This document shows positions 17,325 to 62,000 of a stretch of DNA of 64,000 bases, one piece after another. Under the pieces are notes generated by a model. The model was given only the letters and a program-made list of their open reading frames with translations. It did no database searches and had not been told where the DNA came from. The translations under genes were made by a program, and so were the position numbers. Source of the stretch: Mytilus edulis (taxonomy: Eukaryota); assembly GCF_963676685.1 (NCBI RefSeq), contig NC_092344.1:66464001-66528000 (forward strand), written 5' to 3'. Position 1 is the stretch's first letter. Each line of letters starts with the position of its first letter.

Positions 17325-17698
17325 TATAAAAAAGAAGATGTGATATGATTGCCAATGAGACAACTATCCACAAAAGACCAAAATGACACAAACATTAACA
17401 ACTATAGGTCATCGTACGGCCTTCAACAATGAGCAAAGCCCATACCGCATAGTCAGCTATAAAAGGCCCCGATAAGAAAATGTAAAACAATTGAAACGAG
17501 AAAACTAACGGCCTTATTTATGTAAAAAAAAAATGAACGAAAAACAAATATGTAACACAAAAACAAACGACAACCACTGAATCACAGGCTCCTGACTTGG
17601 GACAGACACATACATAAATAATGTGGCGGGGTAAAACATGTTAGCGGGATCCCCCCCCCCCCCTAACCTGGAAAGTGGTATAACAGTGCAACATAAGA
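17325..17698 (-). mobile_element. Interspersed repeat family A copy with a degenerate twister motif (17573-17679)
   Basis: Same sequence recurs at ~10845-11010, 19382-19542, ~21525-21640 and ~22060-22200. Carries ctgtcccaagtcagga and ccccgc, but UAA is changed to UUA and GAGGG is lost in a poly-G run. Confidence 0.8.
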
Positions 17699-18889: not shown

Positions 18890-19180
18890 TAAAATTGAGA
18901 ATGGAAATGGGGAATGTGTCAAAGAGACAACAACCCGACCAAATAAAAAAACAACAGCAGAAGGTCACCAACAGGTCTTCAATGTAGCGAGAAATTCCCG
19001 CACCCGGAGGCGTCCTTCAGCTGGCCCCTAAACAAATATATACTAGTTCAGTGATAATTTACGCCATACTAATTTCCAAATTGTACACAAGAAACTAAAA
19101 TTAAAATAATACAAGACTAACAAAGGCCAGAGGCTCCTGACTTGGGACAGGCGCAAAAATGCGGCGGGGTTAAACATGTT
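18890..19180 (-). mobile_element. Family B copy, 5'-truncated within the twister motif
   Basis: Reverse complement of ~57156-57443; ends at the aacatgtt palindrome. Confidence 0.85.
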
Positions 19181-19360
19181 CTTGTACGAATATGCATATA
19201 TCAATTTGCTGCTGGACCTCAAGAATCCACCCATAATCATCTATAGTTGAAACTGTGAAATATATGCACAAAAAACATGATAAAAAGCTGCACGTTAATG
19301 TAATACACCGAGTTCTGGTTCATTCCATATCTCCTTTCATCCATTTCGGGTGAAAGTGAT

Positions 19361-43800: not shown

Positions 43801-46800
43801 TCAAATGACCTTGAGAAGATAAATATGGATTAATGCCATTTTAACTTAAAGACATAATGATACCTTCAGACATAATCATTGAAACATTAGAGTTTTCTAT
43901 CTTATTTATCAAATACAAGTATTGATTAAAGGAGGGATTTCAAACTGGAATTTTGTTCATTGCCTTAATCTTTTTTCAGGGGGAAATGTTCAAATTGATT
44001 GATATTTTCCTACTGGGAATTCTGGGATTAAAATCTAGATGTTGACAAAAGAATCTATTACAAAAGAGGACAGATATTTGAAATTTAGATTAGTTCTTAC
44101 TATATTGATGGGTTGTAATTGGAAATACTGTGCTTTCAGAGTTGTGTAAGATTATATCTTTATCGTATTTGGGTTTTTAATTAAGATTTTTTTAAAAGTT
44201 GATTGGATATAAGCAAGATTTTGTCTGTTAACACAGCCAGAGAGATATAAAAACATTAATGTTTTATGTCTGATACAAGTCACAAAGGCTTAGACTGTTT
44301 TCTGCTTTATACTTTTAGCATATTAGTTCTGTGTCATGGATTTTTCAAAAGGGGTATACTATAGGAGAGTAAAAAGGATATGAAATTGGTATTCATTGCC
44401 CTTCCAGTGCACCTGAAATCACCTCCAGTTTTGGTGGGTTTTGTTTTGTTCATGTTGTATAAAAATGAATGAAACTTGTCAGAAGCTTAATTTTTTAGGG
44501 TAAGCCCTTTTCGAGACACTTTTCTGCTCCTCTCTAGATGTAGCCAGACGGATTTGTACTTCCCAATTTTGATTTGTTTAGTATTGGTAATTAAAGGCAT
44601 TTACACCATTTAGTTTAATGGTTGGGACATCAAGAGCAGGGAATTTGTTCTTAAGACATGAAAATAATTAACTTATACTTTGATATTGGCTTTGTTTACT
44701 AATAGAAGTGTTGAAAGTCATCATACTTAAGTTTGTGATGTACTCTTTACTACTGTAATATTACATTGACAGAAATAAAAATAGAAGAAGTGGTGTGATT
44801 ACTTTAGAACAAAAGAAAAAAGTCAAATCACAAAAATACTGAACTTAAAGGTAAATCAATTCGGAAAGTCCATGATCACATGGCAAAATCAAATAACAAA
44901 ACGCATCGAAAATGAATGGACAAGAACTGTCATATTCCTGACTTGGTACAGGCATTTTCAAATGTAGAAAATGGTGGATTAAACCTGGTTTTATAGTGCT
45001 AACTAACCCTCTCACTTTGAAAACATGTTTCCTAATACCTAATTTGTTGACTTTACAGAAATAACTTGTGGGGGAGATTGAAAATGTAAAATCCATGCTC
45101 ATTTTCGTCAAGCATTATCTCAATTAGAGAAGTTATTTTCAGTTCTTTCTTAATGTGAATCATTGAAAAAAAACATTGTATAAATGATGTAACATATTTA
45201 TTTATTTTGAAAGTTTGGAATGCATCATTAAGTTTCACACAGTTCTCTTTTACTCTCTGTTTCCTAATGCACTTGTAGAAATATAGTATCTAGTATTTCT
45301 GCTTATAATAGAGACAAGTATATGTATTGTAGAGGTTTTTCCTTGTAAATGTAATACATGTATTATACATAACCTGTGACTTTCTAGGTTAAATATTGAT
45401 ATCTTACTAGTAAGTTGCTTGTAACCTAGTCCTTACCACAGCTGTTGAAAAGCCAATTTAATTCATTCATCCATGCTTTGTGGAACAAGTACTTCTCGTT
45501 GAACTTATTACTGTCAAAAGGAGTGAGACACCTAATGAAACAAGAACTTGTCATGGTTTAGTAAGCACTGCTGATTAAATTCCATAAAACAATGGGGACA
45601 TTGAACTAGGGTGTATATGAAGGAGTATACAATGACAAGTGGGGTTAATCTTGACAATTTATATTCTGATTGTAGTAATCCCTGGTAACTGATATTATGA
45701 ATATTGGGTCTGTTGATTTGTAATGTATATAAGTCGGGAAAGTCAATAGATATGAGAAAAATTGTTTGAAAATTTTCAGAATAGATTTTTTTATCAGATT
45801 ATGATGACTTATAATTTTTTTTAAAGATTTTAAGAATAGAATATTTAGTCAGATGTATATATATGATTAATTTTTTTACTAAGTGACATAGTATTTTTTA
45901 ATAAGAATTTACGCAATGTCCATGTTAGTGCTCTTAGGAAGTCATAAGACATTAGAAAATTTAAACTGACTTAGGATTTTTAAGTTGTCCGTGTTTATTG
46001 TCTCTGAATATAAAAAAAAAACATGCAAAAAATTATTTGAGAAATTTTTAACAATAGAATTTTTATTTATATAATACGAGATATGATTAATTTTTGACAG
46101 AGTGACACAAGATATTTAAGAAGGTATAATGTAGTGTCCATGCTTATTCTCTCAGGAAGTGATATGCAAATTAAAATTTATTTTAGAATTTTTAAATAAT
46201 TAATTTTTTTGTCATAAATGATTAATTTTGGACAAAGTGACAAGATTTTTAAAATTAGAACTTATTTATTCTCGTAGGAAGTTGATAGACATGCAAAAAT
46301 GTAGTCAAAGAAATTTCTTAGAGTATTTTTTTTTTTATTATCGGATATGATTAATTTTTGACAAAGTGACATAGGATTGTAAAGTAGTTATACAGTGTTG
46401 GTGTTGATTCTCTTGTGGTTCTTAGACATTTTAAGCTGACAAAGCCTGTTGCCATATGATTTATTTACATATGATGCATGTTGCACATTATATGCAATCA
46501 GTATGCAGGTTTTGGGTTAGATAATCTAGTTTGCTTGGAGAGAGAAGCTGTTATGTGACAGTGGGTGTGTTTGCTAGTGTCAGTGATAACATCAACTATT
46601 TTGGTATGACAATATGACTGTGTGTCATAGTCTAGTAACAGCAACAACATGGAGATTAAGAATAACATTGCATAATTTAGGGAATTACTGACCGTTCAAG
46701 GGCTGTATAGCCAGTCAAGGTCGTTAAAAACTTAAAATCAAAAAAAGTAATATTGGGCAAAGAATACAGGATACATTGGAATATACATTTTTGGCAAAGG

Positions 46801-56000: not shown

Positions 56001-59000
56001 AAAATGACTTTAGATGCAGGTTGCATTAATTTAGATAGGAATATTAAAATTTAATGGAAAAAAATATTAAAAATAGAAAATAGGTTTTTCTAGATAATTT
56101 TTTTCTTTTATTTAAGAAACATGATAATCTTTGACATTTTATGACATTAAATCTTTTGAAAAAACCTAGTCAAAAGATAAAAATTAATATTGAAATCAAA
56201 TATATTGTAGGATGATATAAAAAAAAATGTAAGACATGTATGAAGATATGTGGAAACCTGAGAAGCAGAACTAATCATGTTTTTGACATATATGCTAATT
56301 CTTAAGTGATTTATGAAATTTTAATAATCGAACAATCTGGTTAATCTGGATTCTGAATTCAACTTTCGAAACTGTCTTTACATGTATCGTAATTTCCAAA
56401 GCTTAATGAGAATAATCACTCAGACTGCTAAAAAAACAAAAAAATGAATCTTTCCCTAGATAGTTGGTCTAGACTTTGGTACATAAATGAATATATTCAT
56501 TATTAGGTGTTTTAAGCTATTAACAAGTAACTCTGTCCCACAGCAATGAGTTGTCACCTATTTATTGTTCTATTAGTGTAAGTGGTGGTTTGGGAATTAC
56601 TGTTTATAACACTTTTTTGCGGAAATTTGACTTTATTATTCTTTCCACTTTCCTTATGCCTTCCCTTGTCTGGCTTCCAATTTGCACTTCTGGATTCAAT
56701 TGCCGCAAATTTGGGAAATGTTATGTATAATAATGAATAAAGAATCTATTATATATTTGGTGAACTTGTTTGTCTGTCTGTTATAAAAGTGCTTCTCTTT
56801 GAATATAGACATTATTTCTAAAAAAACAGTTGTTGGCATGACACGGGTTATGTTCTTCTCATATATTTTATGATAGTATGATACTAAACCCCTAACGGGA
56901 GGGATTGTACCTGATATTCATATGATGAAGACATAATCTTTCAATCAGTTTAATTGAGATCTGGAGCTGGCATGTCAGTTAACTGCTAGTAGTCTTTTGT
57001 TATTTATGTATTATTGTCATTTTATTTATTTTCTTTTGTTACATCTTTTGACATCAGACTCGGACTTCTCTTGAACTGAATTTTAATGTGCGTATTGTTA
57101 TTGTTTTACTTTTCTACATTGGCTAGAGGTATAGGGGGAGGGTTGAGATCTCATAAACATGTTTAACCCCGCCGCAATTTTGCGCCTGTCCCAAGTCAGG
57201 AGCCTCTGGCCTTTGTTAGTCTTGTATGATTTTAAATTTTAGTTTCTTGTGTATAATTCGGAGTTTAGTATGACGTCCATTATCACTGTACTATTATGCA
57301 TATTTTAGGGGCCAGCTGAAGGACACCTACGGGTGCGGGAATTCTCGCTACATTGAAGACCCATTGGTTGCCTTCGGCTGTTGTTTGCTCTATGGTCGGG
57401 TGGTTGTCGCTTTGACATATTCACCATTTCCTTTCTCAATTTTATTTTAGCATGCTATGAAAGTACCTGCACATATGAAATTGCTCCTAACTTTCACAGA
57501 ACGAGAAACATTGATAAAGATCATCCCCTTAATCTCCATTTGGATTGTTTGATAGGGGAGAAGTAAAAGTGCAATCAAAGCCTCAATTTAAATGTACAGT
57601 TTATTGATAGGGACCTATTGCTATTATTTACTGTTATAGTAAATCACAAATAAGGGCTTCACTAAAATAGGCCCCTAAAATGCACAGTATATTGTTAAGG
57701 TGTATGGTAAACCACTTAGATTGTTGACTCTATGGAAAATGACAGTACAAGCCTCTAACTAAATGTACAATATAATGCTAGGGTGCTTTGTAAATTGCTT
57801 CTAGAGTTGGGCTAGAGTTTATCTAAGTTGGATTGCAATTGAGAGGAATATCTGACGTAACAGTTCTGATGTATGAGGATACACAAATTTAAAAAAGTAG
57901 TAAAAATTATGAATTTAAAAAAAACTCAAAACCTCTAAACATCTTAAGTGCAAAACAGATAGTAAAAATAGAGAATTATTACTGATACTTGTAATTTTAT
58001 ACTGATAAGAAAATAATGATAGGTCTGTGAAGCAGTTATATACATCTTCTCAAGAGCAATTTAAAGATTTTTACAGGCTGTCCATCAATCATACAGACTT
58101 TAAAATGATACTTTCATTATAATCAATAGGAACCATAGACAAAACATATCACTAATGTAGTTATCATAATAGACACAGGCTTTTTTTTTATTTTATAGAT
58201 AAACCCGGAAAACAGTAAAAATAATATTTTTCCAAATGATGTGGTAACGATTTAATCAAAAACAGACATTAGTTATTAGTGTATATGTTGAAATTTGTTA
58301 TTTAATCGAGCTGGGATACTAACCAGACTCTCTGTAAATGTTTCCACAGAAAATTGGTTTGTAAGGTGATGCCCATGATAATGTTTTTTACATATATCAA
58401 TGTTGGTATAATAGATCCAGCTCTGAGCATAGTGATTTAACACAAATCTATAGGAATTGACCTGGTTTTGTCCAGAATATGTGTGGTGATATATTTGCCA
58501 CTGTACATATAAATTACAATGTTTTAATCAGATCCTTAGAATCATGCAAAAGTTTATCTCATAGGGTGTATGCAAAGAGGCCCCTATGCATTAATTTAGG
58601 CCCCATCCTTTCAATTTATAATTTCCATTTAGCTGTGTATCAGTCCTCATCCTTCAATAGTTCATCTGAGACTCTGCATCAAAAATTTCTAGATAAAACA
58701 CAGTGTTGACAACAAGAAATTACAATGCAAACTTTTATTTTGGTCTTATTTGTTTGAAATAAAATTTAAAAGAATGGACAAAAATGTTTTCAACTTAAAT
58801 TTATCTGTTCATGCTTACATAACTAAAAAGGCTGCTAAAACAATTATGATACACCTACATAATGTTGAAACAGGTAACTCCAAATTTTGATTTAGGTGGA
58901 TATTGATCGATAATTACAGAGGGCGGACAAGATTCTAATTAAGTATGAGTGATTGGTGTTTGCTGAATGACAATTGTCCAAATTAGAAATTAAAGTAATA

Positions 59001-62000
59001 ACATGGTTTACAAAATAAATATACATCTTATATGTAAAATTTTCAAAAAATCATGTTTTTTCTCTCTTCAGATGTTACAAGTGTAGTCTGAGCAAGTTCA
59101 ACTGTACATGGTGTATCAAGAACCATATGTGTACATATTATCCACTTCAGGATTGCAGTGAGACAGATGAATTTGTAGCAGCTTCGAATGTAAGTTGACG
59201 TCTGCCACCTAAAAGAGTGGGAAATCTTTAAAATGTATATTCTAATTTTAAGTCAAATCTTAAGTAGATTGAATACAATTGAAGGATTTATCTTAAACAG
59301 GAAAGTTGCTAATAGATCTGCAAAGATCTCTCAATGATACTAGACAATGAATCAGTATTCAAAAACTTTGCATTAAAGATCAGTCTAAAGACCAAGAGGG
59401 ATTTCATTAAAGCAATGTCCTTGATTTTTTTCTTCTATAAAGAGCGTTAATTATTTTAACTATTTGAAATTATCAATTGTCTGTCAACCTACGACTTTCT
59501 GTGTAAAAAGTAAAATAACAAAAATATAGAACTCCAAGGGAGATTCTAATGGTGAAATCAAAAGCTCAAACACATCAAAGGAATGGAAAACAACCGTCAT
59601 ATTCCTGACTTAGTACAGACATTTTCTTATGTAGAAGATAGTGGATTAAACCTGTACTTGAATACCTGGTTTTATAGATAACTTAACCTCAAATTGTCTC
59701 TAATATACATATGCAAAATATTATCGCATATATGTGAAACTGTCTATTGAACAGAAATGCCTTGCATGAATTCTAGATTCTTATTTTCAACAAAGTATAT
59801 ATGTCAATAGTTATCGAAGGTACCAGACTTATAACTTAATATGCCAGATGAGCATTTCATCTACATAAGACTCATCAGTGAGGCTCAGATTAAAATGGTT
59901 AGAAAGCCAAACAAGTTCAAAGTTGAAGAGCATTAAGGATGTACTTAGGTGAGGTTAGGTGAAAATTAATTAAGAAGTTAAAATTGATACTACATTGTAT
60001 AAGCTGGTAGAGCATCAATTAAGGATAAAAATAAGCTAAAAATATTGATAGGTCATGGACCTCCTTTTCGAGATATTTGAGATTTAAAATATGGCAGGAA
60101 AAGGCTGACTCAGACTTTTACCTTATATTTGCATTGGTATTTTTAGGTCTCAAAACAAAAGAAAGAAAATTAAGAATCTTTTAAAATTTTGGTAAATGAC
60201 CTTTCATGAGCTATTAAGTCTTATATGAAAAAATAAATGGGTGTTATGGGGCAAAATATTTTACATTGTATTGTATGGAAAAACACCAAGGAGTCCAAAC
60301 ATTTCACATAAAATCCAAAAACTCACCTAAGTACATCCTTAAGGACCAAAAATTCCAAAAAGTTGTGCCAAATACGGTTATGGAATTCAATGACCGGAAT
60401 AAGTATTTCGATTTTTTGCATACTTTTGCAAACAGTAAATTAAAATAAAATGACCACATGATTCAAATAGACCCTCAAATTTAAGAAATAATAATACGAA
60501 AACATCTTTTAGACTGTTTAATGTCACTGTATATTGAAAATTTCACAAATTGATCAGTACATAACAAGAAGACTTTTATTTTTACAGAGTGGAGGATTTT
60601 TACACAAGCATACAGTAGGACCTGAAAAATGTCCCAGGATAAGTAAAGGACATCCAGAAATACTGGTACCCTCTGGAAATTACAAGAAAGTTGTCCTATT
60701 TGCGCATAACCTCAGGGTAGGTTATTTGATATCATTCATGGCAGATTTTTAACTTGATTGGTTGTTTTCCTTGTATATTTGTAATCAAAAAAAATGTGCA
60801 TGCTTCTGTTTGCGGCCAAACTTGGCACATTATATCAAAATTTGAAAGTTAAAATAGTTTAGTCATTAAAGTTGAAAATGACTAGGAAAACATCTTTTTT
60901 GTGCTATTTTTGAACATCAAATTTCCAGTTTTATATATAGAAAAAATTGTTTTACAAAAATCAGTTTTTCTTCCTATGAAAGTACAAAATGTTTTGCTAT
61001 TAATCTTTGAATATAAACCTTTCAATTATTTCTTTCGTAATAATATGTAGTTAACCTGAAAATTCTTTGATTGCAAATGGTTTAATTTTAGATGTTTCTG
61101 CTGAGATTATACAAGTTTTTGTTTTGATTGTTTTTCAGGCTTTTCAGTACCCTATCTACTGTTACTTCAGCATAGGATCTGGAAGAACTGTTACAGCTCG
61201 TCTAATATCCCACACAGAGTCAGAAAAGATCGTAGAATGTGAAAATACTGAGGTATGGCCCCAGGCTTTTACCATTCGTACAATTTAAATGTCAAACCAG
61301 AAGAAAAACATGTTATTTTACCAAAAACATTTAGCACAAGTTTTTTTAATGTATTATTTTGCACAAAATATTTGTATCATGTTCATATATCTGCATGTAT
61401 ACATCTTAATGAATTGTCATAGAAGTTTCAACATATGGTATCAATATTTACACAAATGTCAAAAAATATTTGGTGCCATACATGACCAAGACAAAATTAC
61501 ATATATAGTTTAAGATTAAAAGAAAATGTACCTTGTTTTGTTGTAGTTGAGTAATGAATTACAAAGATTTTTTTTATAAATTGTGTTTTGTTAATCTTGT
61601 ACTTATTTACTTTCAGTTTTCTTATATTGAGAATACACAAACTTGGAATGTGCCATTCAAAATAACATGGGGTTCCAAAGACTTGAACAAGCCATTTGAT
61701 AATCCTGCAGATGTTCAAGGTAAGTTTATACTAGTAGCGTCAATAGTCGACATGATGTGTACATATAAAGATAAGGAGATGTGGTACCATTGCCATTGTG
61801 ACAATTCTAAATACATAAATATGAATTACAGATCAACTTACACACTTAATCAGAAAAAATCATTGGATTATATAGCTTTTTTTGACGAACACTAATTTTG
61901 ATTGCCGAGAAGCTTAATATTTCATTAACAATAGAACTTGATTATAACGTTCAGCTGAGTTTTACAGAGTTATCTCCCTGTAGTGTTATATACCACCATA

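Follow-up and report, generated by a model that had tools for sequence, protein, structure and literature searches.

At positions 57121-57211 of the forward strand in a 64,000-nucleotide stretch of the Mytilus edulis genome (NC_092344.1, 66,464,001 to 66,528,000; hereafter the window) lies a 91-base motif that reads like a twister ribozyme, raising the questions of whether it is one, what kind of element carries it and what a self-cleaving RNA would do there. The questions bear on the Penelope-like retrotransposons, in which, on the standard account, the canonical clades always carry a hammerhead ribozyme while the very successful Naiads have none, a gap that has been used to argue that the ribozyme may be dispensable or parasitic (PMC8557442). 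The screen from which it was concluded that Naiads have no ribozyme was for hammerheads only (PMC8557442). The analysis presented here makes it probable, with good though not complete confidence, that the motif is a twister-class self-cleaving ribozyme of the type-P5 permutation, located in the 3′ untranslated region (UTR) or pseudo-long terminal repeat (pseudo-LTR) of a selenoprotein-encoding Naiad Penelope-like retrotransposon.

The Twister Core

The elements of the motif can be read directly along 57121-57211 in the type-P5 order P5, P2′, G-A, T1′, the P1 position, N^AA, P2, T2, P3, P4 with its loop L4, P4′, A and P5′, and with the exception of P1 each is present and maps base for base onto the twister fold. 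P5 is formed by GGCUAGAGGU (57121-57130) and its partner GCCUCUGGCC (57202-57211) with 10 bp. A junction AUA (57131-57133), of which A57133 is kept in 27 of 30 sequences, leads from P5 to P2′, GGGG at 57134-57137, which in twister numbering is the 3′-side strand of P2 and pairs with the 5′-side strand CCCC at 57167-57170. The conserved G-A follows (57138-57139), with G57138 as the candidate general base, a catalytic role assigned on the strength of the twister literature (PMC5408937), and then T1′, GGG at 57140-57142, which is separated by a 21-nt region from the U-AA at 57164-57166. By twister consensus the predicted cleavage site is U57164^A57165-A57166, with the scissile bond between 57164 and 57165. 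Downstream of P2 are T2 (GC, 57171-57172), a CGCA-AUUU-UGCG hairpin (57173-57184) corresponding to the optional twister stem P3, and P4, in which CCUG (57185-57188) pairs with CAGG (57197-57200) beneath the loop L4 (57189-57196). L4, UCCCAAGU, divides into U-CCC-AA-GU, providing T1 (57190-57192), the loop AA (57193-57194) and T2′ (57195-57196), and the conserved A that follows P4 (57201) is kept in 26 of 30 sequences. The P4/L4 region aligns with the consensus of the Rfam twister-P1 model (...CGGUCCCAAGCCCGg).

Read together with the comparisons described below, these elements show an architecture in which a long P5 is predicted to close a three-way junction of the P2 arm, P3 and P4, with L4 folding back into two pseudoknots, T1 (CCC with GGG) and T2 (G57195-U57196 with the GC at 57171-57172), both formed by L4. 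The preliminary description of the locus had recognised an intact-looking type-P5 core here, with G57138 and U57164/A57165 as the catalytic positions and CCC/GGG and GC/GU as the pseudoknots. All of this was borne out, in that the elements are in place and covary in related elements, the catalytic positions agree with the twister consensus and both pseudoknots covary even though they lie outside the model used to find the relatives.

A strict descriptor, requiring GAGGG, N-AA and CCCAAG together with paired P2, P4 and T2, gave the 57121-57211 site as its single match in the whole window and no match when the window was shuffled to a total of 51.2 Mb. With a generic descriptor that fixes just 7 bases, about 1.9 chance matches per Mb are found, or about 0.25 per window, so that a loose match alone means little.

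The Host Element

The motif lies within a 5′-truncated copy of a transposable element (56809-57445, forward strand) that consists of 3′ UTR only, has a constant 3′ end at 57444-57450, starts 2-3 nt past the position of the stop codon in the full element and holds no coding sequence. The full unit of 4031 bp (L048:1165-5195) comes from a head-to-tail array on another contig, in which a 5′-truncated copy is followed by two full units with a period of 4031 bp. Its open reading frame (ORF; L048:1546-4554, the full-length copy in G000:C2) has 1002 codons, four in-frame TGA and a TAA stop, and encodes an N-terminal zinc-finger/GIY-YIG endonuclease part (IIY...YVGET), a CxC linker (CNC...GHVITGDL), ADKA and a reverse transcriptase (RT) with YLDD. 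Three of the TGA codons occupy Cys-like positions in the zinc-finger/GIY-YIG part and one comes after the DKA motif. Pfam returned no domain match on pieces of the ORF, and the domain calls rest on these motifs, the published criteria (PMC8557442) and 4376 homologues of the RT part. A selenocysteine insertion sequence (SECIS) element of type SECIS_1 at 56860-56924 (forward strand) was scored on the identical L048:4609-4673 (RF00031, 30.9 bits, E = 5e-4, gathering threshold 35) and begins 55 nt past the TAA stop.

Naiads are characterised by a GIY-YIG endonuclease, CxC, DKA in place of DKG, a C-terminal RT, a length of 3.4-4.4 kb, a tandem or pseudo-LTR arrangement and the lack of a canonical hammerhead (Craig et al., 2021; PMC8557442), and selenoprotein-encoding members are described from clams and spiders, the clam elements combining selenocysteine encoded by UGA with a SECIS on the 3′ side (Craig et al., 2021; PMC8557442). 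Because its ORF of GIY-YIG, CxC, DKA and RT matches these criteria, the element is classified from its sequence as an autonomous Naiad-type Penelope-like element, and the four in-frame TGA codons with a SECIS in the 3′ UTR identify it, on the same footing, as a selenoprotein-encoding transposon of the kind described by Craig et al. The twister motif occupies its 3′ UTR or pseudo-LTR, where 321 nt separate it from the stop upstream and about 235 nt from the 3′ end downstream, and the 3′-terminal segment beyond it (57212-57445, forward strand) is common to all copies up to a single end. No hammerhead was found by Rfam in the window, the full element or the distant loci.

The 131 bases around the motif were 100% identical in at least 40 scored places among 391 first-look candidates in the 1.37-Gb genome, and at least 30 other copies, 99-100% identical, have variable 5′ ends and one common 3′ end, most of them extending further upstream than the window copy. 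By these sequence identities and copy numbers the family is young and abundant. The preliminary description had taken the repeat for a non-coding interspersed one and proposed a non-autonomous, retrozyme-like retroelement. The window copy does lack coding sequence and several twister-bearing repeat families occur within the window, but the copy is the truncated 3′ end of an autonomous, ORF-bearing 4-kb element, the graded 5′ ends and fixed 3′ end are typical of truncation, no hammerhead and no short tandem unit were found and the array spacing is the full 4031 bp. The idea of a short ribozyme-bearing repeat that depends on other elements is already refuted for the main family by its full-length copies and is considered very improbable.

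Two further observations concern the arrays. About 280 bp upstream of the Naiad tandem array lies a satellite of about 3.7 kb with a 41-bp period (L047:1-3754; G000:C2:6410500-6414253), the position of which may fit the reported Naiad insertion bias for simple repeats. A second tandem array (L049/L050; G000:C6:88900000-88916000) has a period of 3090 bp; its units are internally shortened, and in front of each lies a 316-bp 3′ piece whose first base falls about 10 nt inside the ribozyme.

Recurrence in Related Elements

The occurrence of the motif outside this family was followed in 80 marine-metagenome contigs encoding relatives of the RT at 35-100% identity. An initial profile built from four copies of the motif (window, L053, L089 and L110) picked out similar sequence in about 30 of the 80 contigs, on the strand of the RT and nearly always downstream of it. 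A covariance model, R1, was then based on eight lineages and restricted to P2, P3 and P4, such that T1, T2 and the two palindromes found at the P1 position (see below) lay outside the model. R1 gave 41 matches in total and placed the motif in 27 of the roughly 30 loci that combine an RT identity of at least 50% with a 3′ flank of about 360 nt or longer, with a second-round model, R2, adding L114. Beyond this locus R2 added only L100, where the match is cut at the contig end, and a weak match in L121.

In lineages with an RT at least 50% identical the motif begins 276-862 nt after the stop. Below 48% identity it is sporadic, being found in L097, L104, L113 and L115 (43-48%) together with the cut match in L100, and in the distant L097, L104 and L115 it begins only 28-36 nt after the stop. 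Most loci with an RT of 48% identity or less have no motif by R1 or R2, and in 20 distant RT loci without a twister no hammerhead or other ribozyme was found at E ≤ 0.1. An extra copy of the motif upstream of the ORF was found in L060, L083 and L113, as a pseudo-LTR would give.

Three of the relatives have matches resembling SECIS_1 at 23-33 bits, below the gathering threshold, in the interval from the RT stop to the twister (L110:2106-2170, L054:1913-1977 and L112:1044-1106), and the cassette of stop codon, SECIS and twister is therefore older than the family in the window.

Covariation and Conservation

For the covariation analysis 30 matches were aligned to R1 and scored against the full twister structure including T1, T2 and both palindromes. 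Over all 30 sequences 91.1% of pair cells were paired as against 73.4% after shuffling, with none of 500 shuffles reaching 91.1%, and the covariation score was 0.453 against 0.150. When the partners were slid by 1-3 columns only 33-44% of cells were paired, and 18 of the 27 pairs showed changes on both sides. These slid-partner controls, together with the pseudoknots that lay outside the search model, are stronger evidence than the shuffles.

The individual helices differ in how they vary. P2 was paired in 94.4% of cells, with both-side changes at two of its four pairs and forms that include UCCC/GGGA, GCCC/GGGC and ACAC/GUGU, while in P3, where the pairing is likewise kept (96.7%), all four pairs change on both sides. 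P4 was paired in 99.2% of cells and two of its pairs covary. T2 was paired in every cell, with five types of pair at one position (CG 10, AU 8, GU 7, GC 1, UG 1), and T1 in 85.5%, with both-side changes at two of three pairs involving GC-to-AU and UA changes and giving the compensatory forms CCU/AGG, UCU/AGA and ACC/GGU. P5, which varies in length from 10 to 19 bp, could not be set in fixed alignment columns and was scored as flank duplexes; a duplex is present in every lineage although the sequences are unrelated, with a mean of -18.0 kcal/mol compared with -7.6 kcal/mol for swapped partners.

In keeping with a twister active site, G57138 is conserved in 29 of 29 sequences and A57139 in 28 of 29, while at the cleavage site A57165 (A+1) is kept in 27 of 29 and A57166 (A+2) in all 29. 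The N-1 base is U in 26 sequences and C in three, and it has been shown that N-1 is free to vary in twisters, with C, G or A being active (PMC8501958). Within L4, U57189 is found in 30 of 30 sequences, A57193 in 28 and A57194 in 29. The exceptions to the invariance of the active site and loop are visibly decayed copies. The comparison across Naiad lineages thus shows conservation, with covariation, of the predicted twister architecture and of the G-A, N^A-A, loop AA and post-P4 A.

Could the resemblance nonetheless be due to chance, or the motif a decayed relic with no present function? The rate of chance matches to the generic descriptor and the failure of the Rfam models (see below) would allow it. 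The strict descriptor finds nothing in the shuffled sequence, the copies of this young and abundant family are 99-100% identical, and the position of the motif is kept, with covariation, across lineages down to 44% RT identity. Effectively refuted by the covariation, this is the least probable of all the readings considered.

Two U residues immediately after T1′ (57143-57144) are near-invariant, at 29 of 29 and 24 of 30 sequences, and fall outside the assigned pairs. They could pair with A57165/A57166 in a competing hairpin of the minimum free energy (MFE) fold or could take part in tertiary contacts.

Evidence Against a Twister Ribozyme

A number of observations weigh against the assignment. 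When the window was searched with the Rfam twister models (RF02684, RF03160) at the gathering threshold there were no matches, the best Rfam match in the window being a partial twister-P1 alignment over the P3-P4 part (12.9 bits, E = 9), and no copy reaches the Rfam threshold, the partial twister-P1 scores (12.9-23 bits) falling far short of the 67.2 needed at gathering. At E ≤ 10 on the window, the full element and eight divergent loci the twister-P5 model was never reported and Rfam gave only sub-threshold partial twister-P1 and SECIS matches; in the whole-genome search with RF02684 just 79 of 31236 candidates were scored, too few for that search to weigh on either side. The covariance-model check proposed in the preliminary description went formally against a twister in this respect, an outcome overridden by the purpose-built model and the covariation.

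The predicted energies are also unfavourable, with the nested twister fold at -31.6 kcal/mol compared with -36.8 kcal/mol for the MFE fold, which puts a competing hairpin GGGUU/AACCC in place of P2 and T1. As a real structure this hairpin was rejected, for it is not kept where P2 changes (P2 of L115 is ACAC/GUGU). The 30 aligned sequences are mutually related, so that the shuffle figures overstate their independence. Among the relatives, the third pair of P2 is recurrently a C.U or C.A mismatch in a large group of lineages whose T1 is only 2 bp long, and P2 is irregular in a third family. P1 does not form within the molecule, as the ends of 57143-57163 cannot pair with each other. Finally, in the one Penelope-like element studied in vitro, mutation of the hammerhead did not prevent insertion, and RNA-seq showed no cleaved ends (PMC11167929).

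The mismatch sub-type (L072, L074, L060, L067, L081 and relatives; RT 51-58%) has two G-C pairs in T1 and CC/GG as T2. In the third family (window 44930-45023 on the reverse strand, L113:617-708, L104:3400-3486 and L100:2218-2270) N^AA is followed by UCCAC or CCCAC, a strand that fits no clean P2 of 4 bp plus T2 and would imply either a bulged base or a different architecture.

Several of these points would equally suit a conserved structured RNA that has a twister-like fold and no catalytic activity, for example a handle in the 3′ UTR that is read by the RT/endonuclease protein for target-primed reverse transcription. Covariation proves a fold and not catalysis, the motif is situated in the 3′ part of the element, as recognition elements of this kind are, there is no P1 hairpin, no Rfam model matches and insertion of a Penelope-like element in vitro had no need of hammerhead cleavage (PMC11167929). 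Set against this, the invariant bases are exactly the twister active-site set (G-A, A+1, A+2, the loop AA and the post-P4 A) and both twister-specific pseudoknots covary, a set of bases that a protein handle would have no reason to keep, while P1 is unnecessary for catalysis (PMC5408937). A non-catalytic handle is regarded as unlikely, if the least unlikely of the rivals, and a twister-class ribozyme remains the favoured assignment.

Two Palindromes at the P1 Position

In vitro P1 has been found dispensable for twister cleavage (PMC5408937), and as such its absence lowers the strict membership of the motif in the twister class and not the likelihood that it works like a twister. The place of P1 is taken by two self-complementary tracts, palindrome 1, UGAGAUCUCA (57144-57153, forward strand; self-duplex -14.0 kcal/mol), and palindrome 2, AAACAUGUUU (57155-57164, forward strand; self-duplex -8.2 kcal/mol), the latter ending at the N-1 base U57164. 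The same arrangement is found in all lineages, with two tracts of 8-10 nt lying one to a few bases apart and the second ending at or beside N-1. In other lineages palindrome 1 takes forms such as GGGAUCCC, GAGCGCUC, GGGCCC, GGGCGCCC, GGUGCACC, GCAGCUGC and ACGCGCGU, and palindrome 2 forms such as AACUAGUU, AACCGGUU and AACGUU. Many of the differences are symmetric double changes that keep the self-complementarity, such that palindrome 1 is 77-86% paired through symmetric changes, its two central bases included, and palindrome 2 is paired in 86% of cells.

An explanation of the palindromes as small hairpins was rejected, as the two central bases are also kept complementary, which is not needed in a hairpin loop. 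The retention of symmetry, central bases included, while the letters change suggests instead that the palindromes pair between two copies. In the hammerheads of Penelope-like elements the loop of stem III is palindromic, and these ribozymes are considered to be dimeric, aided by the tandem layout (PMC6765202).

Both tracts are perfect palindromes as DNA, and Penelope pseudo-LTRs carry promoters (PMC6765202), so it might be supposed that these tracts, or even the block in its entirety, function as DNA, serving as a symmetric protein site in the pseudo-LTR promoter or as an endonuclease signal, the likeness to an RNA being incidental. The symmetry is kept though the sequence changes completely (GAGATCTC, GGGCGCCC, GGTGCACC, GCAGCTGC, ACGCGCGT), as expected of base pairing and not of a sequence-specific site; in the stems G.U is accepted as a pair, and relative to the RT the motif occurs on one strand only. 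A role as DNA is on these grounds improbable.

Other Copies in the Window

The window holds four further copies or fragments of twister-bearing repeats, all on the reverse strand. The copy at 17584-17671 (R1, 54 bits) belongs to a second, older family and has compensatory changes in P3, P5 and palindrome 1 with a mutated core (A-to-G in the G-A, and A+1-to-U). This family has 2821 first-look candidates in the genome, and 39 other scored places are 92-98% identical. At 19129-19239 is a copy of the main family that is 5′-truncated inside the ribozyme, having lost the 5′ strand of P5, P2′, the G-A and T1′. The third-family copy at 44930-45023 (R1, 50.8 bits; R2, 66.9 bits) has the same fold with ACC as T1 and an irregular P2, and a third-family fragment comprising the P3-P4 part lies at 59597-59702 (R1, 19.7 bits; R2, 28.6 bits).

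Proposed Mechanism

If the motif is a twister-class ribozyme, G57138 would act as the general base on the 2′-OH of U57164 and A57165 as the general acid, leaving a 2′,3′-cyclic phosphate on U57164 and a 5′-OH on A57165. Naiads insert as head-to-tail arrays, from which it follows that cuts at two successive ribozymes would release a unit-length RNA of 4031 nt, and ligation could then turn the released unit into a circle. Each palindrome probably pairs with its counterpart in a second copy, which could be another RNA or the second pseudo-LTR on one transcript, and if so cutting may require that two copies come together, as for the dimeric hammerheads of Penelope-like elements.

A more far-reaching proposal, which is offered tentatively and is more likely to be wrong than right, is that Naiads swapped the hammerhead for a twister that cuts only when two copies pair, be they two RNAs or two pseudo-LTRs, with P1 replaced by the two self-complementary tracts. 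The ribozyme would then be a sensor of tandem arrangement or of copies, releasing unit-length RNA for circularisation and rolling-circle reverse transcription. If true, this would explain both the tandem arrays and the proliferation of Naiads regarded as being without a ribozyme.

Relation to Known Ribozymes and Significance

The closest known structure is the type-P5 twister (Roth et al., 2014; RF02684; PMC5408937), with which the Naiad motif shares P2, P4, the optional P3 and P5, both pseudoknots T1 and T2, the chain ends in P5 and the conserved G-A, N^A-A, loop AA and post-P4 A. It differs in having two palindromes and no P1, in the great length of P5, in Rfam scores far below threshold and in its location in the tail of an animal retrotransposon, and its cleavage is predicted from sequence. 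With the pseudo-LTR hammerheads of canonical Penelope-like elements (Cervera and de la Pena, 2014, PMC4209133; Lunse et al., 2017, cited via PMC6765202) it has in common the class of element, the position in the repeated 3′/5′ flank of tandem copies, a palindromic tract implying two-copy pairing and a proposed role in cutting multimeric transcripts into units. The Naiad motif is of the twister class, however, and occurs in a clade reported to have no canonical hammerheads (PMC8557442).

Twister variants have been described in the RTE element Perere-3 of Schistosoma mansoni (PMC8501958; RTE also PMC7761336), and these likewise serve a retrotransposon and have a twister core whose P1 is relaxed or absent. 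They are type-P1 twisters at the 5′ end that trim the upstream transcript and allow translation, whereas the Naiad motif is P5-permuted and lies 3′ of the ORF. Retrozymes, which are non-autonomous, flanked by hammerheads and form circular RNAs (PMC4918200; PMC7229834; bioRxiv 10.64898/2026.07.22.740005), also have a ribozyme in a repeated flank, and a unit-length RNA with 5′-OH and cyclic-phosphate ends could be circularised in a similar manner. The Naiad element differs from them in being autonomous, 4 kb long and ORF-bearing, with no hammerhead and no short tandem units seen. A literature search, with subscription journals outside its scope, found no paper linking twisters with Naiads, pseudo-LTRs or Penelope-like elements. 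Twisters in retrotransposons are already known from the 5′ ends of RTE/Perere-3, and it is the presence of a twister-class variant in a clade of elements thought to be free of ribozymes that appears to be new, a conclusion well supported as regards the predicted fold and its conservation.

The motif would extend the animal twisters by a very large new group unrecognised by the Rfam models, and would be a natural twister without a P1 hairpin that is possibly dimer-dependent. With it the element has a compact 3′ cassette of stop codon, SECIS, twister and terminus, which is spread through the genome by 5′-truncated copies. A conserved twister in the place of the hammerhead would reverse the argument that the ribozyme may be dispensable, and self-cleaving RNA may be a general need of the Penelope-like class that is met by two unrelated ribozyme folds.

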